64,000 nucleotides of DNA, taken from IMG/VR virus record IMGVR_UViG_3300017991_005548, positions 232,328 to 296,327 of that record. One strand, 5' to 3'. Under the pieces are notes generated by a model that worked only from the letters and a program-made list of their open reading frames with translations, searched no databases and had not been told where the DNA came from. Numbering within the stretch: position 1 is the first letter of the stretch; every line of letters begins with the position of its first letter. Positions 1,248 through 32,400 of this stretch are shown piece by piece. Made by a program: the position numbers and the translations under genes.

Positions 1248-3632
1248 TTACTCTCCAAAATCCAATATTTTATCTAATTCATACTTCTTAAAAAGTTCCT
1301 GGGCTTCCTCTTCATTGAGTGACTCTATCTTTGCCTTCGCAAACTGCAAGAAGTCAACAGAATACTTTTCCAAAAGAACGGGAGCGTATTTTCCAATAGC
1401 TTCCTCTAATTCACTATCAATATCAAGACCAAGCTTGATTGACAAATACAACGCTCTCAATATAATGAATGGGTTGAATGACAATACATCATCTGCATCC
1501 ATGACCGTTTCGATATAATTATCTCCATTAAAAGGAGTGATGAACGATCCAGTGTAAGGGTTATATCCTCTAGCATTAATAGTGAAATCCTTGTTGCAAA
1601 TATCATGCAATACATGGCTGGAAGAATCAAGATCCTGTTTTTTCATCCATCTCTCGATAGTTGGGATCTTTTGTCCTCCATTGAAACAAATCTTCACGCC
1701 TTTGTGATTAAAACAAAAACATCTAGTTGCTGGATCAATCTCAGAGACCTGTTCTCCCAATTCTTCAGCCAACAAACTTCCGAATTTATGGCAGTTTTGG
1801 GATGAATCACTTGTAAATTCAAGTTCCTCAACTTCTGGAGATCTGTTCCCAAAAGATTTCTCTCTTGCATAAGAACCGATAGCATAAACATCTTTGATAT
1901 CGTATTCATGAGCCACACTCTTTGCGGCATCCATAATGCAACTAATAGCATCTTCAAGCGTTGGTCTGCAACCAACAACCTTTGACATAATCTCTCTTAG
2001 TTGTTCATCATTGTTCTGAATAGCATCTTCGACTTTTTCAATTTCTTCACTACCAACTCCCCTATGAATCCAGCAGGAGTATATCTCTTCTCCATCGGAC
2101 TCTCCCAAAGAAAACATATCGACTCCAATAGGACTGCGCCCCATTGACTTTTCAATAACTGACAACATATCTTCACTACAAACAATCCTAGTTGCCTTCA
2201 TATCGCCCCTAAGAATGATTGATCGTATTTTTCTCAACATATCAACAATATGTCCAAGCCCACCCGAAGCAAAACGTTTTGCAGGATGAGTGTTGCTTAA
2301 GTCTCTTGTTGAATCAAACCAACTCTCTGGTTTGAACCTTGGCTCGATCCATCTGTAATAAAACCCCTTGATGTCATATGTTGGGTTATATCTAGGTTGT
2401 GACTTTATCCAGTCCTCTTCTTCTGAAAAACATTCATCTCTGTCATCCCAGGCCATGACTCTGTCACCTAACCCAGGAATAGTTGATCCATCAGAAATTT
2501 CGAGATTATTGTACCACCCAAAAACTGTCGCCATCTTTGTCATCTTTGATGCTTGCTTTAAAGGCATCATCAATGGTTGTGGTCTAGTATCTTCCAGAAG
2601 ATCTTCAGTGATTCTATATCCAGTATCGTCTTTGAGCCTGTCTTTGTCAAGCAATTCTTCAAAAATGAGATCAGGATCTAATTCCCAATCACCTTCAGTA
2701 AATTTCCTCAACTGAACTTCATAGATGTCATGTTCTGGAGATAGGTCTGGAGGGAGTGGAGCCTGATACTGTCTGCCAAGCATTTCTTCGATTGCTCGAT
2801 TTTGATATTGATGGGCGATCATACCCCAATCTGGTTGGGCCTGGAAATTTGCTCCATGATCACCATATCTTCCTGACAAATCAGATCCTGAGGGAGGATA
2901 GAATGGAAAGTGGCTTTGAGCTTCTTTATACCAATTATTTGAGGCTCCTTGCCTTAAACTTAGTTCACCCTCTATGCTGTATTTCTGCTGAATCTCTCTC
3001 ATGGCAGATTCAAGTAATGCTGTCTCAACTTGAGTTGGACCTGCTTCGTCTTCTGCCCCTTTAGCATGAGTGGCTTCGTGAGCCATTGTAGCGGCCATGT
3101 GAGCTATCATAAGATCTTGTCTTAGCTCTGCATGCATTTCTGGTGGAACGATGTCCTGAAGGTTCCTAAAGGATTGCTCCATCTCATTACGAGTGTCTGC
3201 TACATTCAGTCCTAGAACTGATCCTCCTTTACTTTCTAGATCAGCATATACTTGCTGGATTTCATTACGGATAGTTTCTTGGTCTTTCTCTTCTTTAGTG
3301 TCATACGCTCGAAGCATTCCATCTTCTTCGACAATTTCATAACCTCTTGATTCAAGTCTTTTTTGAAGTTCTTGGGTTTTGACTGCCCTATCTAGTGACG
3401 GAACATAAACTCCATAAACACCAGCTTTCGCGAAGTTGAACATATAAACAATATTCTGCAAAAGATTTGAGTCGAATCGATTGACTAAGTCAACTGATTT
3501 CTGGGCATCGCCAAATTGGGAAGAGATGTTGGAGATGTTAACACTTGGGCTTCCGATCAAACTACCTTTATACTCTGGAGCATCACCAGAGTAATACCCT
3601 CCGTAGTCTTGAGATACTTTTATGATTTTCAT
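1248..3632 (-). CDS. multidomain protein: HExxH metallopeptidase-like N-terminus plus degenerate CCA-adding/poly(A) polymerase-like C-terminus
   Basis: AHEATH motif; C-terminal VYAIGSYARE...ELEF, DFTINA and NPFIILRA match class II nucleotidyltransferase motifs VGG.VRD/DxD, RRDFTINA and DPLRILRA. Confidence 0.75.
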   Translation of the reverse strand: MKIIKVSQDYGGYYSGDAPEYKGSLIGSPSVNISNISSQFGDAQKSVDLVNRFDSNLLQNIVYMFNFAKAGVYGVYVPSLDRAVKTQELQKRLESRGYEIVEEDGMLRAYDTKEEKDQETIRNEIQQVYADLESKGGSVLGLNVADTRNEMEQSFRNLQDIVPPEMHAELRQDLMIAHMAATMAHEATHAKGAEDEAGPTQVETALLESAMREIQQKYSIEGELSLRQGASNNWYKEAQSHFPFYPPSGSDLSGRYGDHGANFQAQPDWGMIAHQYQNRAIEEMLGRQYQAPLPPDLSPEHDIYEVQLRKFTEGDWELDPDLIFEELLDKDRLKDDTGYRITEDLLEDTRPQPLMMPLKQASKMTKMATVFGWYNNLEISDGSTIPGLGDRVMAWDDRDECFSEEEDWIKSQPRYNPTYDIKGFYYRWIEPRFKPESWFDSTRDLSNTHPAKRFASGGLGHIVDMLRKIRSIILRGDMKATRIVCSEDMLSVIEKSMGRSPIGVDMFSLGESDGEEIYSCWIHRGVGSEEIEKVEDAIQNNDEQLREIMSKVVGCRPTLEDAISCIMDAAKSVAHEYDIKDVYAIGSYAREKSFGNRSPEVEELEFTSDSSQNCHKFGSLLAEELGEQVSEIDPATRCFCFNHKGVKICFNGGQKIPTIERWMKKQDLDSSSHVLHDICNKDFTINARGYNPYTGSFITPFNGDNYIETVMDADDVLSFNPFIILRALYLSIKLGLDIDSELEEAIGKYAPVLLEKYSVDFLQFAKAKIESLNEEEAQELFKKYELDKILDFGE

Positions 3633-3761: not shown

Positions 3762-4109
3762 TTAGATGCCAAAACCTCCTGCATCATAAGGATCAACGGC
3801 CATTGGGGAGTCGTCCAGAGGATTGTAGCCGTCCTCTTCCTCTTCTTCGTCATTTTCAAGTGGATTGAAAGTGACAGAGGCTTGGCGATGCACCATCTCC
3901 CCCTTCTTTGTTAATTCTGGTTCCCCAGAAGATCCGCCAATTTGTTCAGCGATGTACTTCACAATTTTGGCATTGATGTTTTCACCGTTTTCATCAATCG
4001 CAGTACATGAGACTTGCTCCCCATGGTCCAAGATTGTAACGGTGTACTTTCCTGTCAATTTGTCGATTTTTACTTCGACATCGAGATGAGTTCCAAAAAG
4101 GTCAGCCAT
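3762..4109 (-). CDS. DUF2997-like small protein
   Basis: VEVKIDKLTGKYTVTI..HGEQVSC...IAEQIG...PELT resembles DUF2997; GGAG SD; adjacent to a DUF1257-like gene. Confidence 0.5.
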   Translation of the reverse strand: MADLFGTHLDVEVKIDKLTGKYTVTILDHGEQVSCTAIDENGENINAKIVKYIAEQIGGSSGEPELTKKGEMVHRQASVTFNPLENDEEEEEDGYNPLDDSPMAVDPYDAGGFGI

Positions 4110-4119
4110 TGTTATACTC

Positions 4120-4563
4120 CTAAACCATTCCGTTCAAAATGTCGTCACCATCGATCTTGAACTTGAAGATGAAGTTATCATCATCTTCTTCCTCGGTGAA
4201 GCCCAGTACGTCCAAACGATTGACCATCGTCTTGGCTTTGTACCTTCCGATTTCACCTGGGAGTTCATCTTCGAACTTCTTCTGGCGCTTTCCAGCGACA
4301 GAGCTATGACCACCCAAAGCAACAATCCATTTATTGCCTTCCCGTCTCATACCGAATTCCTCGTAGCAAACTCCTTTTGCTCCGACTGGAACGCGAATGT
4401 GATAGGTTGACTTGGCTTGTTGATAGCCACTTCTCAAAGAAATGTTTCCAGATTCAGAAGTGTCGATTTGACCTTTCCATTCTGGGACCATGTTTTCGAG
4501 AACTCTGGCCATTGTTTGGACATCGCAATTTGCTTGCACTTCACCATAAACATAGTGACTCAT
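4120..4563 (-). CDS. DUF1257/Ycf35-like protein (start revised to MSHYV)
   Basis: GGAGAAGAGCA-ATG at 4563; MSHY...VLENM...EFGMRREGNKWIV...RY pattern resembles DUF1257. Confidence 0.5.
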   Translation of the reverse strand: MSHYVYGEVQANCDVQTMARVLENMVPEWKGQIDTSESGNISLRSGYQQAKSTYHIRVPVGAKGVCYEEFGMRREGNKWIVALGGHSSVAGKRQKKFEDELPGEIGRYKAKTMVNRLDVLGFTEEEDDDNFIFKFKIDGDDILNGMV

Positions 4564-4589
4564 TGCTCTTCTCCTTGGTTGTTTTTGTT

Positions 4590-5651
4590 TTATCTTGCTA
4601 CTTGAATACCATTCTTTTCGCAAAATTCGATGGCGTATATTGAGAATACTCCAGCACTCAATCCGTAGTTGTCGTTGTCTCCAACAATTGCAGTTATTAC
4701 TCCGATAACCTTACCATCATGACGATTGATAATTGGACCGCCACTGTTTCCTGGTAATATTGCGAGATCTAAAAACATGTATAGAGGTGCTCCATTATGA
4801 GAATAGATCTCCCTGTCAAGAGAGCTAACATAACCGAAAGTTGTGTTGTTTTCGAATCCATGAGGACTTCCAACTGCAAAAATTTCATCTCCGACATTAA
4901 CGATTTGATCGAATTCAAAAGGTTTTGCATTGATATCGGCCTTCAGTAAAGCTAGGTCTTTAGCTCCATCAAAGGCTATAACCTCTGCGTTAACCATCTG
5001 ATCTCCATCTTTGATCAGTACCCTTATCATATCCTCATATTCAGAGAAGTCAAGCGAGCTTTCAGTATTTTTGTTGTAATTTTTTACGACATGGGCGCAA
5101 GTAAGGAAATAATTAGGGGCTACGCAGAAAGCAGAACCCGTTTCCTCAGTATTCGTGCTGAAGTTCTGTGACTTTACAACAAACGTCTTTTCAAGAGCCT
5201 CATCAACTTGATTTGGTTCTGGTTCAGCTTGCGCTACTCTAGAGATCCATTTGACAAGAACTCCCCTCTCTTCCATCTTTCTTCGATATTGTTGAGCCGA
5301 TTCCAAAGATGGGAAAGTTTTATAGCCACCTCTAACCTTTAACTTCCAAACCTCTTTATCACCAGAATTATTAGTAAGGTTTCTGAAGATGTCTAAATCT
5401 CTTTCTCTTCTTTTGTAATCGTCACCCTCATCTTTGTAAGATCCAGGTTGAGATTCTTCGTTCCTTGACCAATCTCCCCAATCACCTTGTTGACCTGGGA
5501 GTTTATATTGTTTGCCAGTCAATACATCCCATATGGTATGCACATTATTGAAGGGCATAACGGATTTTGGAGTAGTGGGACTTAAGCCAGAGCCTGGATA
5601 TAGAATCTCAGGCATTGTTGTGCGATAAGCTTTTTTCTTTTGTTTGCCCAT
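4590..5651 (-). CDS. trypsin-like (S1/HtrA-like, no PDZ) serine protease with N-terminal extension
   Basis: Catalytic triad motifs LTCAHVV, DLALLK and PGNSGGP. Confidence 0.92.
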   Translation of the reverse strand: MGKQKKKAYRTTMPEILYPGSGLSPTTPKSVMPFNNVHTIWDVLTGKQYKLPGQQGDWGDWSRNEESQPGSYKDEGDDYKRRERDLDIFRNLTNNSGDKEVWKLKVRGGYKTFPSLESAQQYRRKMEERGVLVKWISRVAQAEPEPNQVDEALEKTFVVKSQNFSTNTEETGSAFCVAPNYFLTCAHVVKNYNKNTESSLDFSEYEDMIRVLIKDGDQMVNAEVIAFDGAKDLALLKADINAKPFEFDQIVNVGDEIFAVGSPHGFENNTTFGYVSSLDREIYSHNGAPLYMFLDLAILPGNSGGPIINRHDGKVIGVITAIVGDNDNYGLSAGVFSIYAIEFCEKNGIQVAR

Positions 5652-6777: not shown

Positions 6778-7719
6778 CTACTTTTTTTTTGTAGCTTCAA
6801 CGATTTGACGGTTTTTGAAATAATTGGATGCAAAGAGTCTATCTTCCTCATCCATTAGATCTTCTTCGTCTAAGTCAGTTACTTCAAAATCCTCACCCAC
6901 TTCGTCAAGACCGATTTGGTAAGTTACAATGCCCTGACTAAGTTTTGAATCATCAAATGAAGCTAATGAAAATGGAATTTCGCCATGATGTTTGGACATG
7001 AAGTATTCCAAATCGTCAGCGATATCTTCCAAAGTCAAACTACTTGTATCGTTTGTACCAGTTATTTCAAGTTTACCAACAGCGGTAGGGGTTCCACCTA
7101 TGTCAATCTCTTCGTAGTAGACTTCTTTAACAGCTTCTAGAACATCATCGTCGTCTCCGAGGTCTTCTATTGGAAAATCAGGATCGATTTCATTAATTTC
7201 AAAGTCCTGTCCATAAGGATCATCTAGGATATCATCCATATTGTCTTCAAGACTACGATCACGTTCCACATAATCCCAATCAATATCCATTGACTGAGCT
7301 TTCTTCTCGAAAGCTATTTTAAGGCCATCTTCGCTTTTGATTTCCCACCATCTTTGTCGCTTGGGAGTTTCTGAGGCTGTCTCATACTCCTCTCCTTCGA
7401 TATTGTAATCGGCCAATCGTTTCTCTTCAAGCTTATTCATATCACCTTCATAAGCTTGAGCATTTCTGTGTTTAGAACCAAATTCATCTTTGGCTTCATC
7501 TAGGTTTTTCTCAATAACAACTTCTGCACTACCAGTTCTGTTGTTTTCAAGAAGCTTTTCCATAACTGAATCTTTGTCACCTACGTGATGAGGATCTAAC
7601 TGCTTATCTGTAATTTCCTCTGGAATGTCGCCATGGGATTCTGACAACATGCGATCAGTATGGGCATCTTCATCTAATTTTTCATAGACTACAAATTTAT
7701 ATTCAGACATTTTATGCAC
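6778..7719 (-). CDS. acidic protein, possible head scaffold/core protein
   Basis: 313-aa D/E-rich ORF next to the terminase, AGGAG SD; function inferred from context only. Confidence 0.55.
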   Translation of the reverse strand: MHKMSEYKFVVYEKLDEDAHTDRMLSESHGDIPEEITDKQLDPHHVGDKDSVMEKLLENNRTGSAEVVIEKNLDEAKDEFGSKHRNAQAYEGDMNKLEEKRLADYNIEGEEYETASETPKRQRWWEIKSEDGLKIAFEKKAQSMDIDWDYVERDRSLEDNMDDILDDPYGQDFEINEIDPDFPIEDLGDDDDVLEAVKEVYYEEIDIGGTPTAVGKLEITGTNDTSSLTLEDIADDLEYFMSKHHGEIPFSLASFDDSKLSQGIVTYQIGLDEVGEDFEVTDLDEEDLMDEEDRLFASNYFKNRQIVEATKKK

Positions 7720-7769: not shown

Positions 7770-9605
7770 CTAAAATCTCATCCTAACAGTTACAGGTTCT
7801 GGAAGAGCAGGGTTCAGTCCATCAGTAGCAGAAGAAACAGCCCCTACTAAGCAATCAACTACATCATCTGTCTTCACATCTGCATTTTTATCTGGCAGAA
7901 GAGAAATTCCTCTTGCAATTCTTTTGAATTTTAAGTGTTGCATCTCTGCTAACATATATGAAGCATGTCCATCATCATCATAAAGATAAATTTCAGGATT
8001 TGGTTGATACTCCATCATCATCTTCATATTTCTATATAATTTCTGTTTAACACTTCTGTTATATTGAATCTTTTGACAATTTACTCCATGACTCCTCAAA
8101 AACTGCAAACTGTGTACAGACTGAAAGTCATCATAAGTAACTCTCAATGGTCTAAAGATTTTGCAAATAGTTAGAACATCTCTATCAATCTCATGGAATT
8201 GTAATCCAATACCTGGAACTGGTTTCCAGATCCATACGCCAGCTAATTCAACCATCCATCTCTTTTCCCCCTGATTGTTTCTATATTTCTTAGCGGCAAT
8301 CAAAACCATACTGAAGTTATTTCCGCCATTGGCTGGATCAACATGAGCATAATAATTGTATCCTGGTGCTGGTTTGGCATGAGGGCCAAGATCTGCCCTT
8401 ACACATCTTTCAAGCAATCCTTCCTCAAAATAGTTACCATAAATACCGCCACTAGCCCATTGAGCGCCATACTCAATAGCAAACATTTCTGGGTTACTCT
8501 CTCTATCACCAACCATCTCTTTGTTATAAAAATCAATATCATCATTTACACACCAAGTTGGCAACTGAAACGATAAGATAGAATCATCTTCTAATGATCT
8601 TCGATACATATCATAGAAAATACCCATCCTATTGTTCGGTGATGATATCATCACTATTCGAGCCGCATTATATTTGTAGAATTTAGATAATGATGGCTTT
8701 AATCTGTTGAAGAAATAGGTCCCTGTTACCTTACCACTCTCATCATAGAATGCAATCTCGTCAAACAGAATAAGAATAGCACTATATCCAGCAAGTGAGT
8801 CTGGATTACTATGACCACAAAGAAGTAGAATAGATCCCGCAACTTCAATGTCAACTCCCTGACTTTTCTTTTCTAAGTCAGAGTCAGTATACAAACGAAT
8901 CTCCGAAGAAATTGATTTAGCGATTCGTCCTTTGAAAAAAGGAGAGTTTCTAATTCTAGCCTGAATCTGTCCAAACAAACGTCCAGCCTGAGATTGTGAC
9001 AAGGCAACATTAATAATTGCAATTTCATCATCACTAGGTAGATTATAGTAGCTATGGGGATTACCCTCATTAATAACTAGTAACTTGTACGCTTCATACA
9101 CAGTTATGATTGAAGCCATCAAGGTTTTACTTCCACGTCTACCTAAGACAAGATGCAACATACTAAAATATTCAGGTCGTCTGTCTTCTGGCTTCTTCCC
9201 CTCATTTTCATCATTCCCCTTGGCCTTCTCATCGTGGAACCTGTCCATCTCGATCATTTTTTTGATAACCTCTTTGATGTTCCTTTCATAAGTAACACCT
9301 TCAAGAGTCTCATCTTCTTCATTACCGTAAAGCCACTCCCACTCTTCTTTATTGAGATGAAGGTCTTCATTTCCTATAGTGTTCTTGTAGAAGCACTTAA
9401 GGATAACTCTTTGGGAAGTCCAGAGATCAAGCTGATTCTCTTCTGATGGTAAGTTTAGGTAGTCTGGATGATCACAAAACGTTATGATATCGACTATCTC
9501 TTTGTAACCCTTGTTCTTTTTCAGAATCGGGTTTTTGGTATTAATCTGAAGTATTGCTTCTTCAAGTGGATTAATAGCTTTCTGCTTCTTCTGGCGACTC
9601 GACAT
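7770..9605 (-). CDS. terL: terminase large subunit (start revised to MSSRQ)
   Basis: Walker A-like LVLGRRGSKT, Walker B ILFDEIAFY, coupling motif ISSP, RNase H-like nuclease HVDPA...DDVVDC; GGAGG SD before ATG 9605. Confidence 0.88.
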   Translation of the reverse strand: MSSRQKKQKAINPLEEAILQINTKNPILKKNKGYKEIVDIITFCDHPDYLNLPSEENQLDLWTSQRVILKCFYKNTIGNEDLHLNKEEWEWLYGNEEDETLEGVTYERNIKEVIKKMIEMDRFHDEKAKGNDENEGKKPEDRRPEYFSMLHLVLGRRGSKTLMASIITVYEAYKLLVINEGNPHSYYNLPSDDEIAIINVALSQSQAGRLFGQIQARIRNSPFFKGRIAKSISSEIRLYTDSDLEKKSQGVDIEVAGSILLLCGHSNPDSLAGYSAILILFDEIAFYDESGKVTGTYFFNRLKPSLSKFYKYNAARIVMISSPNNRMGIFYDMYRRSLEDDSILSFQLPTWCVNDDIDFYNKEMVGDRESNPEMFAIEYGAQWASGGIYGNYFEEGLLERCVRADLGPHAKPAPGYNYYAHVDPANGGNNFSMVLIAAKKYRNNQGEKRWMVELAGVWIWKPVPGIGLQFHEIDRDVLTICKIFRPLRVTYDDFQSVHSLQFLRSHGVNCQKIQYNRSVKQKLYRNMKMMMEYQPNPEIYLYDDDGHASYMLAEMQHLKFKRIARGISLLPDKNADVKTDDVVDCLVGAVSSATDGLNPALPEPVTVRMRF

Positions 9606-10422
9606 AATATTCCTCCAATATATAAACACAACCATTGTCTGATGGACAAAAGGTCAGAATTTTATTTCCAACCTTATATATTTCAAACAAATGAGTCGCA
9701 TCTCCTTCAGAGGAAAGCATATGCACAGTATTGTCACTTAAAAAGAAAAGTTTGTTCTTGACATAATATATGTCTTTTAGGTCTTTGCAGTCATCGATAA
9801 TTGTGTACGTTGAGTTTTTTCGTATCCCCCTTAAGCAATTGTTACCACTGTCTGCAAAACAGACAGTTTTTCCCATTATTGCAACTCCAGTTGGTTTAGA
9901 AATCCTCGTATTTTTTAAATTTGATATTGAGAATCCAGCCTTACCACAACCTATAAGTGGAAAGGCGTTCTCCTCATTCATTATAAAGCATCTGTGACAA
10001 TTTGTAGTGCTCCAGATGACTTGATTTTCTAATGAAGTTACATAAGTCCTTGAGTCGCTTCTTCCAAGGACTTTTCTTCTAAATTGTTTAGCACTGTTTT
10101 TTGAGATCAAATTCTCAAAATCCATCAACTCCAAATCGACTTTGTGAATTCGGCTACCACCTTCTGAAACTATATATAAACAATCATAACTGGAATTATA
10201 GCATATCGAACTGAAAGTTGAAAAGTCTGGCTTCTCAGTATATGTGAGTTCATAACGCCAATCAGGATTGCAGTCGCCATTATTCATCTTTCCTATGCCA
10301 TCATCATGTAGGAAAAACAGATTATCCCCAACACAACAAAAATCCTTGATCTCGAAGTTGATCTCGAAATTTCGTTGTTTTCGGGTGGTAAGGTTCTTTT
10401 CTGTAAGTTTATAGATCATCAA
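9571..10422 (-). CDS. degenerate NHL-type beta-propeller protein
   Basis: LYIVSEGGSRIHKVD and KPTGVAIMGKTVCFADSGNNCLRGI resemble NHL repeats. Confidence 0.6.
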   Translation of the reverse strand: MMIYKLTEKNLTTRKQRNFEINFEIKDFCCVGDNLFFLHDDGIGKMNNGDCNPDWRYELTYTEKPDFSTFSSICYNSSYDCLYIVSEGGSRIHKVDLELMDFENLISKNSAKQFRRKVLGRSDSRTYVTSLENQVIWSTTNCHRCFIMNEENAFPLIGCGKAGFSISNLKNTRISKPTGVAIMGKTVCFADSGNNCLRGIRKNSTYTIIDDCKDLKDIYYVKNKLFFLSDNTVHMLSSEGDATHLFEIYKVGNKILTFCPSDNGCVYILEEYYVESPEEAESY

Positions 10423-11844: not shown

Positions 11845-14800
11845 TTACGAGTCTTTTTCGCTTAGCTTCTCACGTATGGATACTCCAAGTGCTCCGCTTT
11901 CACAATGACCGCCTGAGCAAGCGTCTCCAGCCCCGCCACCATAATTGTCTAAATTGCCATATTCATCTTCATAACATCCTGACCAGTCAACATCAATATA
12001 TGTTCTAGTCAGATCTAACCACTTCTTCCAGTTCGCGACATCTTTAAGGCAATATGTCATTTTTCTAACATCACCTTCAAAATAGCGATCTGCAAATTGT
12101 TTTGCCCTTCTGACCCAATCCAATTTTTCTTTGTAGTTTTCTACATTATGGTTAAGCCAAGCTTCAAGTAGTTTGTCTGGAGAGTCAGGGGACAATCCTT
12201 CGTTTTTCCACTTGATCCCATTTGTTTCAAAATCTCTGGAGATCTTATTTCTTAAAGGATCAACATAGATAATCTCTCCAATGCCAAGCAAACAATCACA
12301 AGCTTCCCAAAGATTGTCTTTAAATACTCTCAATCCGTCAACAATAAGACCGCTGGCGAATAAACTGCCATCCCCATACTCTCTGACGATCTCTGTGATG
12401 GTCATAACTGCCGTAAAAGGCGCTTGAGGGTAATCTTTGTCCCCAGACATAGGTAACATAGAAATTCCCGCATAATACCTTCTATTGCGATAAATGTGGT
12501 TAGCAACATCATCCCATTCATGTGGCTTGATGTTAATAGTGTTTGATACATTATGTCTTAGCCAAGGATAAATAGCCGTATCATGTCTTGTCCCTGACTC
12601 AACCCAATTCTGTTGAGTAAGCTTAACATTCTCAAGAAGAGTTATGGCACCGACCTGATTTTTGGTTTTGGCTCCATCAGGAACTTCGCATAAGAAGGTA
12701 ATAACAACATCAGTGTTATTATTTGACCATACTGATTCTTCGATAGCATCTGGGTTATGTTTTTCAAAATATTTCAGCGGAGTCTCAAGTTTGTTTGCTT
12801 GAACTCTCCTGAAATATCTTTTGGCATGATGAGGATGAATCCCAGATGCAGTTCCCAAAACACAACTCGTAGATCCAGCAGGCTTAACACATGTAGCTCT
12901 TGCACATAAATTGATGCCAAGTATTCCTGCAATCTTCTCATTAGTTTTAAGAATAAGTTTAGCACCCTTCCTTTGTAATGCAGGATCAAAGGCCATATCA
13001 GGATTATCTGCCATACCTGTCATAGAAACACCGAGAAGTGCCTCAAGCTTTACGATTTCCTGAGTGATGTTGCCCAAATAATGAAAGGTATCATACGAAG
13101 CTTGAATAGTGCCAATGATTGCCGCCGCTTTACAAGAGTCAAGAAAATCCTCTTCGGTTTTAACCTTCTTTACATTGATCTCACATAAATTGCAAAATTG
13201 CCATCCGCTAAGATATTCATTATTGTCCTGAGCGATAACAGCAGAGGCAAATTCTTTGCGGAATTGATCATTCAAAGGGAGCTTTGGGACCATGCCGATT
13301 TCAACACAGTTATGTACATAAACTCCGTTTCCATCGAACGCATGAACAACGGGAACAGTACAATCATATACTTTTTCAATCCCCTTACTCTCTTTAGAGG
13401 CAACTGTAGCTATGAATTTACTCTTATTTGGTTTTCTTTTATATTGACTCAACAAACTATCAAGTTTTTGAATTTTATATGGTTCTGAAAACCCGATCCT
13501 ATTTCTATAAACCCAAATAGATTCATTTGAAATAACAAGTTCATGGGCCGTTTGGCAAAAATAATCTTTTTTACCACCTTTTCCGTCAGGCATTGGTTTA
13601 AAACCCTCACCTCTACGGTTTTTATAAACTTTAGACACAATACCAAGGCGGAGGAGCATCCTTTGTACAGTTTTTAAATTGTTAAGAGAGATGCTGTGTA
13701 AACGTATTGACATCCCCTTCTTTAAATCGCCCTGGACAGATCCATCTGCATCAAAATACCCCTGAAGGAACCCTCTATACATATCTGAAGAACTTCCCTC
13801 TATTTTACACCCTATCTCCTTTTCACCACGTTTTATTCCGTAGTATTCTGCCATCTTTTTTAACCCAGAAGAATATAACCTTAATTTACCGACATTTGAC
13901 GTTTGTTTTCCTCCTGTCATTTCTTTATATGTATGAAGTCCTGACATTTTTATTCTTTTGATAGCCATCTTCATCATATGAGACCTTGACTCTCCCCAAT
14001 AGTCAAGCAATGCACTATTTTTAGTAAAGGTTCCGTCCCCAAGCAAACTGCCCAACAACCAACCTTTATCAAAGGTTTCATGAAACCCTTCTCCCTTCCA
14101 TGTAAGATTTTGGTGATTATGTAAAACTATTTGATCTCCAACGTTTAGGTCTTTCAGTTCAACCCAACCCTCTGGAGTCATTATCTGGTGATTACTGGTC
14201 GCCTCTATGCAAAATCCCTCTTTAGTTTCTAAACCAAAAAGCTCTTTTTCCCCAGTTTCAAACATCCCCTTTTTTGTAGTAGGATATACTTGACCATCAA
14301 CTATTGCTCCAAACTGTTTGCCCAAAAGATTTTTTGCTTTCTTCGGGCCATGATCTGTCATAACCCAAGTGTCACCACTAACACATGGATTATAAACGAT
14401 GTCATTACTTTCTGCCCAAACGAAGCCTGGTTCACCAAATTCTTTGTTCAATTCAATGAATTTCATGAACTGCTCTTTGGAGGTTTCGCTTCGCACTAAA
14501 ATAACAGAATTATTTGATCTTCCTCTTTGAGGATTCTCTTTGCGCCAAGCGCCAGTTTTGGCTTTTGCCATCTCTTCGTCTTCAGGAGAGAATAAACAAA
14601 TAGATGCACTGCGGCGAATTCCACCAGACAAAACAGCATCAGAGGAATGCATCATGATATCATAAGCATCAATTGGCCTAAGACAGTCACCAAACTTACA
14701 ACATCTATTAAGCAGAACATTGATATTATATAGTGATATTTTCAGTCCATCTGGTCCAGGGGCCTTGCTTCCTGAGGAAATTGGAGCACCTTCTGGTCGA

Positions 14801-15348
14801 ATTTGGGAAAAATCGAAGATCACTTCATATCCTTGATATTCTGGGAAAGGAACGTCATCTCCAATAAAAAATGAAGATAACAAAACCCCGACAGAATCGG
14901 CCCATCCTTCGATGCTGTCTGGGATTACGAAAGTCTTAGTCCCTTTAGTCGGGTTGGCTATGCCAGGAAGCTTCGCGACATGGTGGGTTTGAACTGAAAA
15001 TCCGATTCCACAACCACAAAGTAAAAGGAACATACCTTCTTGAAAAAATCTTGGTCTGTCACAATACGAGACCGTACAATTGTATAACTTCTCATGCTTG
15101 TCTAGAATTGGTTTCCCCCCAAACTGCAATGCCCTTTGAGATCCAAGAACCCTTTTTCTTCGAACCATTCGTTCTGCGAAATCCATTTCTTCTTTTAATT
15201 GCTCACAAATCTCTGGCCCAAGCTTCTTTCGATGCATGTCAAATACTCTAGTGACTTGTTCTTCCCAAGTCTCTCGTCTTTTCATCTCAGGTAGGTATTT
15301 GGCATACTTCGAAAAACGTGTATATTCTTGAAGTGCTCTGACGGACAT
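11845..15348 (-). CDS. nrdJ: class II (B12-dependent, monomeric RTPR-type) ribonucleotide reductase containing an intein
   Basis: RRETWEE, YNCT, GCGIGFS, IRRSA, NP|CVEI, QFCNLCE, TCVKPAGSTS and C-terminal C..G.C motifs. Confidence 0.93.
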   Translation of the reverse strand: MSVRALQEYTRFSKYAKYLPEMKRRETWEEQVTRVFDMHRKKLGPEICEQLKEEMDFAERMVRRKRVLGSQRALQFGGKPILDKHEKLYNCTVSYCDRPRFFQEGMFLLLCGCGIGFSVQTHHVAKLPGIANPTKGTKTFVIPDSIEGWADSVGVLLSSFFIGDDVPFPEYQGYEVIFDFSQIRPEGAPISSGSKAPGPDGLKISLYNINVLLNRCCKFGDCLRPIDAYDIMMHSSDAVLSGGIRRSASICLFSPEDEEMAKAKTGAWRKENPQRGRSNNSVILVRSETSKEQFMKFIELNKEFGEPGFVWAESNDIVYNPCVSGDTWVMTDHGPKKAKNLLGKQFGAIVDGQVYPTTKKGMFETGEKELFGLETKEGFCIEATSNHQIMTPEGWVELKDLNVGDQIVLHNHQNLTWKGEGFHETFDKGWLLGSLLGDGTFTKNSALLDYWGESRSHMMKMAIKRIKMSGLHTYKEMTGGKQTSNVGKLRLYSSGLKKMAEYYGIKRGEKEIGCKIEGSSSDMYRGFLQGYFDADGSVQGDLKKGMSIRLHSISLNNLKTVQRMLLRLGIVSKVYKNRRGEGFKPMPDGKGGKKDYFCQTAHELVISNESIWVYRNRIGFSEPYKIQKLDSLLSQYKRKPNKSKFIATVASKESKGIEKVYDCTVPVVHAFDGNGVYVHNCVEIGMVPKLPLNDQFRKEFASAVIAQDNNEYLSGWQFCNLCEINVKKVKTEEDFLDSCKAAAIIGTIQASYDTFHYLGNITQEIVKLEALLGVSMTGMADNPDMAFDPALQRKGAKLILKTNEKIAGILGINLCARATCVKPAGSTSCVLGTASGIHPHHAKRYFRRVQANKLETPLKYFEKHNPDAIEESVWSNNNTDVVITFLCEVPDGAKTKNQVGAITLLENVKLTQQNWVESGTRHDTAIYPWLRHNVSNTINIKPHEWDDVANHIYRNRRYYAGISMLPMSGDKDYPQAPFTAVMTITEIVREYGDGSLFASGLIVDGLRVFKDNLWEACDCLLGIGEIIYVDPLRNKISRDFETNGIKWKNEGLSPDSPDKLLEAWLNHNVENYKEKLDWVRRAKQFADRYFEGDVRKMTYCLKDVANWKKWLDLTRTYIDVDWSGCYEDEYGNLDNYGGGAGDACSGGHCESGALGVSIREKLSEKDS
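13309..14385 (-). mobile_element. intein (359 aa) with LAGLIDADG homing endonuclease
   Basis: Starts CVSGDTWV, ends VYVHN followed by Cys; internal LLGSLLGDG and FLQGYFDADG motifs. Confidence 0.95.
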
Positions 15349-15359
15349 AAAGTGTCTCC

Positions 15360-16580
15360 TTATTTCTCTATTAAATCTTCTACAAAACTACTGACAACTT
15401 CGAACATAAACTGCTTTACATCCCCCCTAAAGTCATCCACATCATCGATTGGTTGATCCAATCGTTTCAATAACTCTCTCCCATCTTCAACAATGTCTTC
15501 TGTGTCATCAAACGTTTGCAGTTTTATCAGAGCATCTTTGATTTCATCATGCACTTGCAATCTCCAGGGTTCTTTGCGATAAATATCACTACAATTTAAC
15601 AATCTCAAGTCATGAACTTGGTTTTTGTCTGAAAAATTTCTGGAGATATGATAGCTATGAGTTGTTGTGATGATTTGACTATCCTCAAAACATCTTTTCA
15701 TAGCCCTGATTAAAGGTAAATGTCTTCCACTTTCAACATGCATTTCTACATTATCTATTAGGATTATAGATGGGACGTATTCTAAATTCAAAAGAGAAGA
15801 AAATGTTTTCATGATTTTCCTCTCTCCATCGCTACATTCTTTATAGTGAATTGTTTCATTGGGTTTGTGTACGTAGAACCCGAACACATACTCTTTTTTA
15901 ATTCTGGAGTTTCCGACAGAGAATTCCGTTTCTTCTTCTTCTATCTCAAATCCAGTTACAGCTTCAAACAATTCTTTGAAGATCACCCATTTACCTCTGT
16001 CCAATTGGAACTTTCTTAGCTCCTGATCAAATCGAGTGAAGTAACATAATCTCATTACGAGATTTCTGATTTTTTCAGGGTGTCCTTTCTTAAATCCCTC
16101 CTTAGTGAGTATAACTTCATAATCTCCCAAAGATGTCCCCAGAGTTGCCCTAATGCAGAAGTCGGCATCCCCATAAACACCTGACTTATCCCCTCCTTCC
16201 ACATGACGAACAGCCTTACCAAGTATGGATTTTAGACGAACTTCATCATATTGTTCGTAATTAGTAAAAAGGGAGTAAATAATTTCAAGGGTTGTTGACT
16301 TTCCACAGCCATTGGGTCCGATAAAACAGGCAAAATTGCTGGTTTCATCTTTATAAGTAAAGTCTATTAAGAAGTCATGGAAGATTTTATAGTCTCTTAT
16401 GTAGAGACGCTTCACTTTGACGTAAGGAAAATCTTTCTCTGAGAAATTGGGCATAGCAGAAATGAGCTTCTGAAGGTCATCAGTGACATTTGTCTCATTG
16501 GTTACCTGATCTTCGGCACAATCAAACTCAGTTTTGTTCTCTATGAAAAAATCTTTACCTTTTGTCGTCACTTCGTCCAT
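15360..16580 (-). CDS. ABC/SMC-type (AAA_15/AAA_21-like) ATPase
   Basis: GPNGCGKST Walker A, SDGERK signature, ILIDNVEMH Walker B/D-loop, TTTHS H-loop. Confidence 0.88.
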   Translation of the reverse strand: MDEVTTKGKDFFIENKTEFDCAEDQVTNETNVTDDLQKLISAMPNFSEKDFPYVKVKRLYIRDYKIFHDFLIDFTYKDETSNFACFIGPNGCGKSTTLEIIYSLFTNYEQYDEVRLKSILGKAVRHVEGGDKSGVYGDADFCIRATLGTSLGDYEVILTKEGFKKGHPEKIRNLVMRLCYFTRFDQELRKFQLDRGKWVIFKELFEAVTGFEIEEEETEFSVGNSRIKKEYVFGFYVHKPNETIHYKECSDGERKIMKTFSSLLNLEYVPSIILIDNVEMHVESGRHLPLIRAMKRCFEDSQIITTTHSYHISRNFSDKNQVHDLRLLNCSDIYRKEPWRLQVHDEIKDALIKLQTFDDTEDIVEDGRELLKRLDQPIDDVDDFRGDVKQFMFEVVSSFVEDLIEK

Positions 16581-17836: not shown

Positions 17837-18613
17837 ATGATTAACAACAAAAATAATTGGTATTCTGAGGCTAGAGAAGCCTCTTTAATCGTTCAAGAAG
17901 CTGGTATCACTGATAACTGGAAAACATTGGTGTTTGCGGTTGCACTTGTTTTATCAGGGTTATCTCTAATTGATGTATCTGAGAAGACTGGATTACCACC
18001 TGAACAAATACAACAAGCCCTCAATAATAAAGAAATAGTTGAACAAGCTCAAAATCAGGAAGAATCATCAATGCCTAGATTAGATTTCTCTGGAATCGAG
18101 GAATTAATTCGACAGCATGAAGTTTCTGGTGCCGAAAGGTATGTTAGAGTTAAAGGTAAAAACGTTGACATAAGAAAAGCATATCCTGATCCTATTCATG
18201 GATGGAAAGTTCCAACCATTGGTGTTGGTTATAATTTAAACAAACCTGAAGCCAGAGGGGAAATTGAAGCTCTAGGACTAGATTATGACAAAGTCCGTAA
18301 AGGAGAGCAAGCCCTAACTGATGAACAGGTAAATATACTATACCGAGACGATATAGCAAAAGCAATACTTTCTGCAAGAAGATTCCTACCGAATTTCGAT
18401 CAACAACCAACTGAAGTAAAAACAGTAATCGTAGACATGGCTTTTAATTTAGGTGAAACCCGATTGAGAAAATTTAAAAAATTCAGGAAAGCGCTCGAAA
18501 ACAACAATTATCAAGAAGCCGCAGAAGAGATGAAAAACTCTAGGTGGTATCATCAAGTTGGGAATAGAGCGAAAAGAAACGTTGAAAAAATGTTGGAATT
18601 TCACTCCAAATAG
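17837..18613 (+). CDS. GH24/T4-type lysozyme with N-terminal hydrophobic segment
   Basis: LIRQHE...YPD...PTIGVGYNL, IVDMAFNLG, EEMKNSRWYHQVGNRA. Confidence 0.9.
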   Translation: MINNKNNWYSEAREASLIVQEAGITDNWKTLVFAVALVLSGLSLIDVSEKTGLPPEQIQQALNNKEIVEQAQNQEESSMPRLDFSGIEELIRQHEVSGAERYVRVKGKNVDIRKAYPDPIHGWKVPTIGVGYNLNKPEARGEIEALGLDYDKVRKGEQALTDEQVNILYRDDIAKAILSARRFLPNFDQQPTEVKTVIVDMAFNLGETRLRKFKKFRKALENNNYQEAAEEMKNSRWYHQVGNRAKRNVEKMLEFHSK

Positions 18614-21938: not shown

Positions 21939-22511
21939 ATGGGTAAAGAAGACACCAATCCCTGCAACAATCTTGAAGACAACCGAATTATTTATGTAAA
22001 TGGAAATTTCAACGAAGAAATGACCAAGAACATATATGAAAAGCTAATAGCACTGGAAACAAAAGATCCTAGAAAAGACATTTTCATGGTCATTGACTCT
22101 TATGGTGGATACTGCCACAGCTTCCTTGCAATTCATGATGCCATGAAAATGTGTAGGTGTGATGTTGCAACGTTTTGTATTGGGAAAGCTATGTCATGTG
22201 GGCAAATGTTATTGATGTCTGGGACTAAGGGTAAGAGATTTGCCTCCCCAAATTGCAGAATACTTGTCCATCAACTTTCTAGTGCTTGTTGGGGAACTTT
22301 GTCAGAAATGCAGGTCGAAGTTACTGAGAGTGAAGAAATCCAGAAAATTATGGACAAAATCATTCTTGAGAACACTGGGATGACCAAAAGGGAATTAAAA
22401 AAGCTGATGTCAAGAGATTCTTATCTATCTCCAGAAGAAGCTATAGAATTTGGAATTGTTGATAAGGTCGTTACCAGTTATAAAGACATTTACAAAACGG
22501 TAAAAATCTAA
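21939..22511 (+). CDS. clpP: ClpP-family protease
   Basis: IDSYGG, catalytic Ser AMSCG, His ILVHQ, RD.YLSPEEAIEFGIVD. Confidence 0.93.
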   Translation: MGKEDTNPCNNLEDNRIIYVNGNFNEEMTKNIYEKLIALETKDPRKDIFMVIDSYGGYCHSFLAIHDAMKMCRCDVATFCIGKAMSCGQMLLMSGTKGKRFASPNCRILVHQLSSACWGTLSEMQVEVTESEEIQKIMDKIILENTGMTKRELKKLMSRDSYLSPEEAIEFGIVDKVVTSYKDIYKTVKI

Positions 22512-29463: not shown

Positions 29464-32400
29464 TTATCCAAAACCAAATAAACAGTATTGATCTGGGAAT
29501 GCCTCTGATGAACTTGAACTTTCGGAGAATCCTTCGCTTGAACTTGAACTTGAACTTTCGGAGAATCCTTCGCTTGAACTTGAACTTTCTGAAGAAGAGC
29601 TTTCTGAAGAAGAGCTTTCAGAGAAACCCTCTGATGAACTGCTACTTGAATCTTTAGAACTACTTGATGACGAAATATCAGCTTCAAAACAAGTTGCCAT
29701 TGCTGACAAACTGATATTAGTACCAGTAACAGTAGTTCCTGTTTCAGTGTACCACCTACCTTTAATGGTATAGGTTCCTGCTGGTAATTTATTTTCTGTT
29801 CTTACAAAAATTGAGCAACTTCCATCTTCATTAGCTGTTCCATGACTTCTTCTAATCTCACCATAATCAGTTCCATCAATGTTGATCGTGAAAAGAACAT
29901 CTCTATTTGCAACATCTGCTGATGTCTGTAATGTCATGCATGCAAAAATGTGGCCCTCTTGATTTAACTGTAGGGTTATGGAAGATCCATCTATATCCTC
30001 TATGGAAGTTGCAGTTGTTGTATCAGAATTAACTATTGTCTGGGATGATGGAAGAAACTCTTCTTGATTTGTTTCGCATCCGAAGGCCGTAAGCATAAAT
30101 GGAGCACCAGTGGCAGTAACTGGAGATTCAACACTCCACCTTCCTTTAACTGTTATGTCTCCAGGACCAAAGTTACTTCCAGTTCTTGAAGCTATACATA
30201 TAGAAGATCTGTCTCCTGCACTTGAATGGAACCTGGTAATAGGCAACTCTTGACCACCAATGTTCAGGGCGCAAGTAATGTCTTTGGCGGCTCCACCAGA
30301 AATGTATGTGGTTGCAGATAGGAAACCAAAAATTGGATGGTTCGTCTGCATGGTCAAGTCTTGAGTTAAGCCATCAATATCCTCTAGTGTTGCAGATGTT
30401 GTTGTGTCATTTGCAACTGTATCATATATTGATGGGATTTCATTTCCATAACAACTCTGCATAGGAATGGCGATAACAGTGATGCTAGTTGCAGATAGAG
30501 TTCCTCCTTCAGTATACCATCTACCTTTAACTGTGTATGTCCCTGCTGGAAGAGTGCTTGGAGTTCTATAAACAACACCAACACTACCATAATCATTTGA
30601 ACTTGACTGGTATCTAGTAATCACAGGAGAATCTGTTCCATTGATGCTAATGGCGAAATAACCTTCTTGGTTATTAGTTGTATTGTTGCTTGATAACGAC
30701 ATGAATCCCATTATGTGGGCATCGTCAACCAATATAACGTCAACGCTTGCTCCATCGATATCCTCAAGAGCGGTTGTATTGGTTGTGGAGTCAGATGCAA
30801 CAACTGCTCTTTCAACAAACATGCAATTAAGACATTCCAAGCTTGAAGAGCTACTTGATGAACTGCTAAATCCTTCACTACTTGAGCTTGAAGGAGAAGA
30901 TTCAGAAATACTTGACGATGACTCAGACAGAGATGAAGACGATTCGGACTGAGAACTCTCTGAGAAAGAACTCTCAGATTGACTACTGCTGGATTCTGAT
31001 GTACTACTTGAGCTAGATGATTCTGAGCTTATACTTTCAGTAAACTCATCGCAGTGTCTGTACCTAAAATGAACGTTCTCTGTAGAACTACTTGATGAGT
31101 TACTACTTGATGATTCACTCTGCGAACTTGAACTTTCTGAGAATCCTTCGGATGAACTGCTTGAAGGAGAGGATTCCGACTGACTAGATGATGATTCTGA
31201 TTGAGAACTACTAGACTCACTTTGTGATGACGAACTCTCTGACTGAGAAGATTCACTTTGAGAACTAGAACTCTCTGACTGCGAAGAACTGGATTCAGAT
31301 TGAGATGAATCGGACTGACTACTTGAGCTTTCAGACTGACTACTTGAGCTTTCAGATTGAGATGAATCGGACTGACTAGATGAACTTTCAGATTGACTAC
31401 TTTCACTTTGTGAACTGCTTGACTCTGATTGACTACTTTCAGACTGAGATGATTCACTTTGAGATGATTCCGATTGACTACTTATACTTTCGGTAAATAA
31501 ATCGCATAACAAATATTTGTAATGAACGTTTTCTGTTGAACTACTTGATGATTCACTACTTGAGCTTTCACTTTGAGAACTTGAGCTTTCAGAGAACCCT
31601 TCAGATGAACTACTTGAGCTTTCAGAGAACCCTTCAGATGAGCTACTTGAGCTTTCAGAGAACCCTTCAGATGAGCTACTTGACTCAGATTGTGACGACT
31701 CTGATTGCGAAGAAGAACTTTCAGACTGGGAGCTACTAGACTCAGATTTACTACTTTCACTTTGACTGCTACTGGACTCTGACTGACTGCTACTGGACTC
31801 ACTTTGTGACGACTCTGATTGCGAAGAAGAACTTTCAGACTGGGAGCTACTGGACTCACTCTGAGATGATTCACTTTGAGAACTACTCGATTCCGATTTA
31901 GAACTACTGGACACAGACGATTCACTCTGACTGCTACTACTTTCTGACTGAGAACTTGAGCTTTCAGATTTTGAACTACTGGATTCTGATTGTGAACTAC
32001 TGGATTCACTTTGAGATGATTCACTCTTAGAACTGCTGGACTCTGATACAGAACTTTCGGAAATCGAACTACTAGATTCAGACTGAGAGCTTTCACTCTG
32101 AGATGATGAACTTTCACTTTCTGATGAGGAGCTTTCTGATTGAGAGCTACTGGACTCAGATTGCGAACTTTCTGATTGAGAGCTACTGGACTCACTTTGA
32201 GATGACTCACTTTTACTACTGCTTGATTCGGATTGAGAAGATTCACTCTTTGAGCTACTGGATTCTGACACAGAACTTTCAGAAATCGAACTGCTAGATT
32301 CTGACTGAGAACTCTCACTCTGCGATGAAGAACTTTCTGACTGACTACTTGAACTCTCACTCTGCGATGAAGACGATTCAGATTGAGAACTCTCACTTTG

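Follow-up and report, generated by a model that had tools for sequence, protein, structure and literature searches.

A zincin-like domain fused to an eroded CCA-enzyme head and neck in a conserved protein family of uncultured large phages

In the Pol beta superfamily, the third acidic residue of the triad is essential. CCA-adding enzymes are inactivated when their DxD motif is changed to AxA, and the incoming base is templated by the Asp and Arg of their EDxxR motif, two residues for which selection yielded no working substitute (PMC11784652). In the polyvalent proteins of phages and conjugative elements, a zincin-like peptidase serves as the hub domain (Iyer et al. 2017, PMC5512222). Here we describe a phage protein in which a zincin-like domain and a domain derived from a CCA enzyme occur together. 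The DNA analyzed, referred to as the window, is a stretch of 64,000 nucleotides (positions 232,328 to 296,327 of the IMG/VR virus record IMGVR_UViG_3300017991_005548) and constitutes the final 64 kb of this 296-kb record. One of its minus-strand genes encodes P0001, a protein of 794 amino acids (aa) whose frame is open throughout under translation table 11. P0001 consists of a zincin-like domain (ZIN), an extremely conserved linker formed by two central segments (MID1 and MID2), a small domain (D4), and a C-terminal part (NT) that corresponds to the head and neck of a CCA enzyme in eroded form (Table 1). This fusion is real and previously undescribed, and its gene is a core, single-copy gene in a clade of uncultured, mostly very large phages.

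The two enzyme-derived ends of the protein

To identify the C-terminal part, a profile of 53 homologs was compared with the PDB. It matched the Aquifex A-adding enzyme 4wby at E = 5.8e-14, followed by CCA enzymes and poly(A) polymerase I at 1e-11 to 3e-9, including 1vfg, 1miv and 3aqm. The full AlphaFold model was confident from residue 458 to the C-terminus, and a Foldseek search with this model returned 46 class II nucleotidyltransferase chains at E <= 1e-3, the best of them at 2.9e-9. The profile and Foldseek matches agree and lie far outside chance expectation, and the C-terminal part was assigned a nucleotidyltransferase fold. The homology spans about 235 aligned columns, and the alignments reach only the first 200-240 residues of the solved enzymes, which are the head and neck. 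P0001 ends after the neck, and the body and tail are absent. Neither the query nor the 53 homologs matched the body and tail domains PF12627 and PF13735 in Pfam, unlike the related proteins P0223, P0225 and P0241. On its own the query scored 17.2 bits against PF01743, below the gathering score of 23, and E = 0.1 against the Geobacillus CCA enzyme; 45 of the 53 homologs matched PF01743. In the hidden Markov model (HMM) alignments, ELE falls at the DxD position of motif A, which reads DVD in 4wby and DLD in many homologs; NKD is placed on RRD, and NPFI on the DPxR of EDxxR.

The motif columns were then read in an alignment of 120 family members. In the query, motif A is GSYARE...ELE instead of the canonical GGxVRD...DxD, with its acidic character kept; DLD together with GGYPRD is retained in 21 of the 120 homologs. 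The two motif A carboxylates, both Glu in the query, are acidic in 56 of 119 members. At the third acidic position, which aligns with the Glu of lEFATAR in 4wby, the query has Cys649, and the column contains D in 36, S in 19 and E in 18 of the 120 members, with other residues in the rest (D or E in 54/120). The complete acidic triad is therefore present in only 29 of 120 members, and not in the query. All 21 sequences of the query clade have D or E at the first two acidic positions, while the third drifts among C, Y, S, F, R, L, M, H, E and I. Motif B is NKD in the query, and the family has N (100/120), then R or K, then D (111/120). Motif D reads FNPFI in the query, and N-P-x-x-I is found in about 111 of 112 members. 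On a tree built solely from the zincin and central columns, the triad state changes at least 14 times, compared with about 25-28 times when the labels are shuffled.

An alignment with canonical relatives also gives a graded series. The zincin-fused CCA enzymes described below are fully canonical; a 499-aa nucleotidyltransferase encoded in a related locus keeps DxD and D..R; the full-triad family members are without motif D; and the query additionally is without the third acidic residue. NT is among the least conserved segments of the protein, with only D4 lower, and eight homologs keep everything up to residue 556 without most of NT. Nevertheless, 112 of the 120 members and a sister group have NT in its full length and with few gaps, and its identity within the clade is 51%, again with few gaps. 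Sixteen of its positions are near-invariant family-wide, including G586, R590, D682-F-T-x-N686, N720-P721 and R726-A727.

The N-terminal domain carries an HExxH motif that is kept in 119 of 120 homologs. In the predicted models, H185, E186 and H189 sit at the end of the helix formed by residues 164-190. G192 follows HExxH as in a metzincin turn. E196 is invariant in the stored alignments and E203 is present in at least 90% of the sequences; both lie on the next helix and are candidate third metal ligands. In a model of residues 1-462 folded with 112 sequences, residues 17-231 reached a predicted local distance difference test (pLDDT) score of about 93. An exhaustive structural search with ZIN recovered zincins recurrently among the top 40 matches with Z of 5.0-7.9, a range (below 8) in which a match can reflect a common arrangement. 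The best matches were YbeY (Z 7.9, 7.7 and 7.1) and the predicted zincin protease 3e11 (7.4), followed by deuterolysin (6.4), AsaP1 (6.3), Wss1 (6.0 and 5.6) and archaemetzincin (5.4); selecase, abylysin and the aminopeptidase N catalytic domain were also found. Searches by sequence were less informative: a profile of residues 1-462 matched nothing in the PDB at E <= 10, and ZIN of the query and the 53 homologs matched no Pfam family. A feature search of the ESM Atlas with residues 1-232 gave NleC, GtgA, SprT and NleD as neighbors with scores below 0.9, which are leads only, and an Atlas shape search was uninformative, all template modeling (TM) scores being below 0.3. The zincin assignment was made because the structural matches, modest in Z, agree with the HExxH signature. 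ZIN is probably an active zinc hydrolase.

An earlier note on this DNA, made from the letters alone, had described the gene as a metallopeptidase fused to a degenerate CCA/poly(A) polymerase fold. The 794-aa frame and the named motifs were all found where the note had put them, with HEATH starting at residue 185, WYKEAQ at 234, KRFAS at 452, ELE at 603, NKD at 680 and NPFI at 720. Its metallopeptidase was borne out as an HExxH metallohydrolase domain by the zincin-like fold match and the near-invariant motif, and its class II origin of the C-terminal part by the profile and Foldseek matches. The equivalences that it drew (ELE for DxD, NKD for RRD and NPFI for DPLR) hold in the HMM alignments to solved class II enzymes, and the degeneracy of the catalytic and nucleotide-templating motifs is real in the query (E, E and C; NKD; FNPFI). 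The possibility that the fold is not that of a nucleotidyltransferase, which the note had allowed for, was contradicted by the comparison with solved CCA enzyme structures. It had also considered that homologs might retain DxD and that the decay might be local; DxD is indeed kept in some homologs, but the scarcity of complete triads, the repeated changes on the tree and the near-universal replacement of motif D do not fit a decay confined to one gene. WYKEAQ and KRFAS, which the note took as separators of the parts, are positionally right and bound the central region at both ends.

Table 1. Features of the P0001 gene, the surrounding gene block and other genes in the window. Coordinates are window positions.
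Feature	Position	Strand	Remarks
Whole gene, 794-aa protein P0001 (ZIN-MID1-MID2-D4-NT)	1248..3632	minus	Open reading frame list and translation
ZIN, zincin-like metallohydrolase domain, residues 10-232	2937..3605	minus	Model, structural matches, motif conservation
HEATH, residues 185-189	3066-3080	minus	HExxH; G192, E196 and E203 come after
MID1, residues 233-347	2592..2936	minus	Starts with near-invariant WYKEAQ
WYKEAQ, residues 234-239	2916-2933	minus	MID1 start
MID2, residues 348-457	2262..2591	minus	Most conserved segment; ends with HPAKRFAS
KRFAS, residues 452-456	2265-2279	minus	MID2 end
D4, small alpha/beta domain, residues 458-556	1965..2261	minus	Confident in full model
NT, degenerate class II tRNA nucleotidyltransferase head and neck, residues 557-794	1251..1964	minus	Profile, Foldseek
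ELE of motif A (GSYARE...ELE)	1818-1826	minus	Aligned with motif A DxD
Third acidic position, C649	1686-1688	minus	Cys
Motif B, NKD	1587-1595	minus	Aligned with RRD
Motif D, NPFI	1464-1475	minus	Aligned with DPxR of EDxxR
w181	2-544, runs off window	minus	Orthologs carry PF02643 DUF192
w98	504-800	minus	Conserved downstream gene
w156	775-1245	minus	Conserved downstream gene
w115	3762-4109	minus	Between protease and target
w167	4120-4623	minus	Between protease and target; orthologs in most loci
HtrA/DegP-like serine protease, 353 aa	4590..5651	minus	Trypsin_2 at 4e-23; two genes upstream of target
w276, 276 aa	5710-6540	minus	Block gene
w313	6778-7719	minus	Block gene
Large terminase (TerL)	7770-9635	minus	phrog_2 at 5e-28
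w283	9571-10422	minus	Upstream end of block
Ribonucleotide reductase with intein and LAGLIDADG homing endonuclease domain	11845-15348	minus	phrog_367 at 7e-97; Intein_splicing, LAGLIDADG_3
AAA_21/AAA_15 ABC-type ATPase	15360-16580	minus	Family also in abortive-infection and toxin-antitoxin systems
Lysozyme-like protein	17837-18613	plus	Endolysin and tail-lysozyme PHROGs
ClpP-like head maturation protease	21939-22511	plus	phrog_94 at 5e-34; separate from trypsin-like protease
Single 4276-aa open frame	29464-42294	minus	

Conservation of the central region, the family and the gene neighborhood

The central region begins with WYKEAQ immediately after ZIN and ends with KRFAS immediately before residue 458. 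Both WYKxAQ and HPAKRFA are near-invariant, including K236 and K452-R453; in the 120 homologs the WYKEAQ columns contain W in 115, Y in 116, K in 105 and R in 15, A in 110 and Q in 114. MID1 was predicted well only in part, with a pLDDT of about 86 for residues ~285-325 in the 1-462 model and low values in the remainder. MID2 has a mean column conservation of 0.76-0.79, and its pairwise identity is 0.80 within the clade and 0.69 family-wide, yet its pLDDT was below 50 in both models and no confident fold was predicted. Because it is so conserved without a predicted fold of its own, MID2 most likely folds on a partner or serves as a processing substrate. The MID2 pattern GWYxNL...QPRYNPxY...GFYYxWxEPR also terminates three unrelated proteins of ~565 aa and sits inside an ATP-grasp protein, so this second half of the central region acts like a module that can be moved between proteins. 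It is plausible that the protein is processed at WYKEAQ and KRFAS, given their invariant basic residues, the co-conserved serine protease described below and the zincin of the protein itself. A complex prediction for the serine-protease domain with residues 225-462 scored 0.00, which is evidence neither way. D4 directly precedes NT wherever both occur in a domain HMM scan of the proteins from the exhaustive search, and it is retained in the eight homologs that have lost most of NT. The Atlas search with D4 gave mixed short matches and assigned no fold or family.

To define the family, relatives were collected in two ways. A word search yielded 139 relatives, mostly matching across the full query length, and a profile search with residues 1-462, exhaustive over 1.84 billion representatives, yielded 188 proteins. 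The whole protein was unmatched in a tblastn search of 50,697 phage records, and P0001 matched no family in a PHROGs scan. A standalone zincin searched against the same phage records gave a single match, in an unannotated 595-kb uncultured record, and P0223, which contains a complete CCA enzyme, matched cultured phages through its nucleotidyltransferase half only. The family is thus real, conserved and small, and has no cultured member among the records searched.

Domain HMMs were run over the proteins of the exhaustive search to obtain their architectures. The main one is ZIN-MID1-MID2-D4-NT, and the sister group, of about 800 aa, has ZIN-(divergent middle)-D4-NT. In P0222, P0223, P0225, P0235 and P0241 the order is reversed: a complete CCA enzyme, often with an HD domain, is followed by ZIN, and these NT-ZIN proteins carry NT without D4. 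ZIN also occurs as a standalone protein of ~200 aa. The ZIN signature is intact in all 27 of the 27 proteins of other architectures examined. From these layouts we conclude that the zincin and class II nucleotidyltransferases were fused repeatedly, with either partner coming first. One standalone zincin, P0239 of another phage (locus L020), is encoded directly after a gene of more than 3290 aa. In addition, an extra N-terminal domain of ~300 aa is present in P0023, P0025, P0047 and about 50 other homologs. These extensions are mutually homologous, match no Pfam family and have no counterpart in this genome. Comparison ruled out that they are the neighboring protease, except in P0097.

The gene of P0001 belongs to a block that contains the large terminase. 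The order w283-TerL-w313-w276-protease-w167-(w115)-target-w156-w98-DUF192 is fixed in 11 distinct full loci, which come from viral and metagenomic contigs with identities as low as 31%, and the sister group shares it. The protease lies upstream of the target in every syntenic locus, its H187, D232 and S303 are invariant in 13 orthologs, and in one phage it is fused to the N-terminus of the target (P0097; E = 4e-96). The small proteins w167 and w115 matched no family, and relatives hold small genes of 105-150 aa at their positions; profiles of w313, w276 and w156 against the PDB gave nothing usable. Parts of the block recur elsewhere. Locus L018 has a MID2-ending gene followed by a w156-like gene, DUF192, a nucleotidyltransferase gene and a CCA-HD-ZIN gene; L019 has a terminase, a MID2-ending protein, a w156-like gene and DUF192; and in a T4-like contig a standalone zincin lies directly upstream of the large terminase.

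Several observations were made on individual genes of the block. The consensus of w276 orthologs contains an AT-hook-like GRPKGSKNK motif with a weak HMG-I/Y match (E = 0.57), and the protein may bind DNA. The large terminase orthologs have 980 aa in L009:82-3024 and 762 aa in L015:24-2312, as against ~600 aa elsewhere; the longer ones may contain inteins or other insertions. Together with the ClpP-like protease, the trypsin-like protease gives this phage at least two candidate morphogenetic proteases. The position of the gene had also raised the idea that the target is the major capsid protein, which was dropped because both confidently predicted parts have non-capsid folds.

The source is a very large uncultured phage. 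Its window contains, besides the large terminase, an intein-split ribonucleotide reductase and the 4276-aa frame (Table 1), and two contigs, of 476 kb and 524 kb, contain the identical sequence. The phage genome may exceed the 296-kb record, as suggested by its many tRNAs, its giant genes and the 524-kb contig with the same protein. IMG/VR labels this record as a provirus, cut from the 476-kb contig. Outside the window, the genome encodes a ~675-aa class II CCA-adding enzyme of fully canonical type (G000:C1:201003-203030, plus strand, locus L022), which has an HD domain and the motifs GGWVRD...DID, RRD and DDPLR; its gene lies ~32 kb upstream of the target gene. P0001 is therefore not the CCA enzyme of the phage. 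ARAGORN detected 46 tRNA genes, also outside the window, in several arrays, all on the minus strand (G000:C1:9997-197469). One of these tRNAs has the anticodon CTA (labeled Pyl) and would read the amber stop. No sign of recoding was seen in the window, where frames are open under table 11.

Possible functions of the fusion

The reading that we prefer, with some reserve, is that the zincin works as the catalyst, the center docks or is processed, and the nucleotidyltransferase end binds, in a layout resembling that of polyvalent proteins. ZIN would do the catalytic work, most likely as a peptidase. The central region would be a docking or processing segment between the invariant basic motifs WYK and AKRF, where either the partner serine protease or the zincin itself might cut. 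The nucleotidyltransferase-derived end would no longer polymerize in this phage and would instead bind a nucleotide or a nucleic-acid 3' end: this putative binding module retains G586, R590, D682-F-T-x-N686 and R726, but not the third acidic residue or the Asp and Arg that template the base. The phage does not need the target for CCA addition, because it has the canonical enzyme and the 46 tRNAs elsewhere in its genome. Also in favor of this reading are the ZIN signature, which is under the strictest constraint, the erosion of NT, the fixed gene order, the protease-target fusion of P0097 and the standalone zincin beside a large terminase in the T4-like contig. As with polyvalent proteins, P0001 might be made along with the packaging genes and possibly be loaded into the capsid.

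Several findings weigh against this proposal. The structural matches to zincins are modest, all with Z below 8, a Foldseek search of the PDB with the 1-462 model gave nothing significant, and neither the query nor the 53 homologs matched the polyvalent-protein peptidase family in Pfam. The gene block contains no recognized portal or capsid gene; because of this, and because the ClpP-like protease is encoded elsewhere in the window, the block may not be a head-assembly module. Finally, the repeated fusion of zincin and nucleotidyltransferase points at least equally to RNA as to protein substrates.

This last point leads to the main rival, an RNA 3'-end enzyme, which we regard as possible but rather unlikely; the three other alternatives discussed further below are each less likely. 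Here the zincin would hydrolyze at the RNA end, as a YbeY-like ribonuclease or as an aminoacyl- or peptidyl-tRNA esterase, and NT would only hold this end. Consistent with such a role, zincin and nucleotidyltransferase are joined in at least three layouts (ZIN-MID-D4-NT, ZIN-x-D4-NT and CCA(+HD)-ZIN), L018 clusters the genes of a zincin-bearing CCA enzyme, a second nucleotidyltransferase, MID2, a w156-like protein and DUF192, YbeY endoribonucleases account for three of the four top structural matches, and a PTH2 gene lies near the target in L003, in addition to the 46 tRNAs of the phage. However, HExxH with an invariant Glu is peptidase-like and differs from the H-x3-H-x5-H of YbeY, the tRNA-holding body and tail are absent, and eight homologs with ZIN, MID and D4 largely do without NT. 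The most conserved segment is MID2 and not the RNA-related part, and the gene is tied to the terminase block rather than to the tRNA arrays or the canonical CCA gene. A related proposal, a new phage-specific 3'-end system in which the eroded head and neck would hold the 3' end of a tRNA or of the genome while the zincin cuts, trims or deacylates it, appears doubtful to us. If it were true, the repeated independent fusions of this particular zincin to both intact and degenerate class II nucleotidyltransferases would mark a new partnership in the phage-host conflict over tRNA; likewise, a shared RNA substrate would add a new activity to the phage repertoire in tRNA conflicts.

The earlier note had proposed that P0001 is a polyprotein cut at WYKEAQ and KRFAS to free an inactive tRNA decoy, which would shield tRNAs from host anticodon or CCA nucleases. 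The active-site degeneracy is real, two motifs with invariant basic residues flank the central region, and there are two candidate proteases, the zincin of the protein itself and the co-conserved serine protease, with which the target forms one polypeptide in P0097. Nevertheless, the decoy idea is weakened because the body and tail, which bind the acceptor and T arms of tRNA, are missing and only head and neck remain, and because NT evolves fast (second only to D4) and most of it is missing from the subclade of eight homologs. Nor does a stoichiometric decoy fit well with the place of the gene in a block linked to the terminase, and we consider this model improbable.

Highly improbable, in our view, is an active nucleotidyltransferase of new specificity, in which Glu-x-Glu would still bind metal and add a nucleotide to a new acceptor (RNA, a DNA end or a protein) without a base template. 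The invariantly acidic first two positions in the 21-sequence query clade, the invariance of G586, R590, D682 and N686, and a subset of the family that keeps GGYPRD with three acidic residues would fit such an enzyme. On the other hand, the third acidic residue is Cys in the query and drifts freely in the clade, the acidic pair is lost in 63 of 119 members, and the D and R of EDxxR are lost family-wide, with no substitute having arisen in the CCA-enzyme selections (PMC11784652). That NT is a functionless, decaying remnant of an old fusion, with only ZIN, MID and D4 mattering, would agree with its low conservation (second to D4), its repeated catalytic loss and its truncation in eight homologs, but it is the least probable account, since the full-length domain in 112 of 120 members and the sister group, the 51% clade identity and the 16 near-invariant positions, N720-P721 among them, show conserved positions persisting across lineages at 31-40% overall identity.

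The protein represents an undescribed core gene family of uncultured large phages in which three of the five segments (this version of the zincin, MID and D4) match no curated family. The family provides a natural pseudo-enzyme series, from canonical zincin-fused CCA enzymes through full-triad members to the eroded form, with which to ask what role head and neck have after polymerization is lost. The tight linkage to the intact serine protease and the one fusion with it furnish a concrete hypothesis of processing at two invariant basic motifs.

Comparison with known systems

The class II tRNA nucleotidyltransferases and poly(A) polymerase I (PF01743; 4wby/1vfg, 1miv) have a head and neck homologous to those of P0001, in which the order of motifs A to D is still recognizable. 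In contrast to these enzymes, P0001 is without body or tail, has GSYARE...ELE for GGxVRD...DxD, Cys as the third acidic residue, NKD for RRD, and FNPFI for EDxxR, the last being a family-wide change. The three segments preceding NT have no counterpart in the class II enzymes.

The YbeY metallo-endoribonucleases (7y7o, 1xm5 and 1oz9) are the best structural matches of ZIN, over 117-120 residues, and relate to RNA ends, as does the NT partner domain of P0001. Their zinc motif is H-x3-H-x5-H with no Glu after the first His, whereas P0001 has the peptidase-type HExxH-x6-E; ZIN reads HEATHAKGAEDE, with no third His at the YbeY spacing. Sequence searches against the PDB detected no similarity between YbeY and P0001. 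With the minimal zincins (Wss1/SprT, archaemetzincin, the minigluzincins selecase and abylysin, deuterolysin, and NleC and GtgA, which are type III effector proteases), ZIN shares a small fold of ~100-200 residues around the HExxH helix, and its HExxHxxG resembles the metzincin turn. It differs from them in that Z is only 5-6.4, the spacing of E196 and E203 fits none of them exactly, and ZIN has a conserved GAYGVY strand.

Like the polyvalent proteins, P0001 links a zincin-like HExxH domain to unrelated enzyme-derived domains and is encoded beside packaging genes, and its zincin also occurs solo or as the terminal part of other large proteins. One family member matched Tox-MPTase2 at E = 0.026. 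The nucleotidyltransferases of polyvalent proteins are minimal Pol beta versions found in conjugative elements and are not of the class II CCA type (PMC5512222). The layout of P0001 is fixed across the clade, not shuffled.

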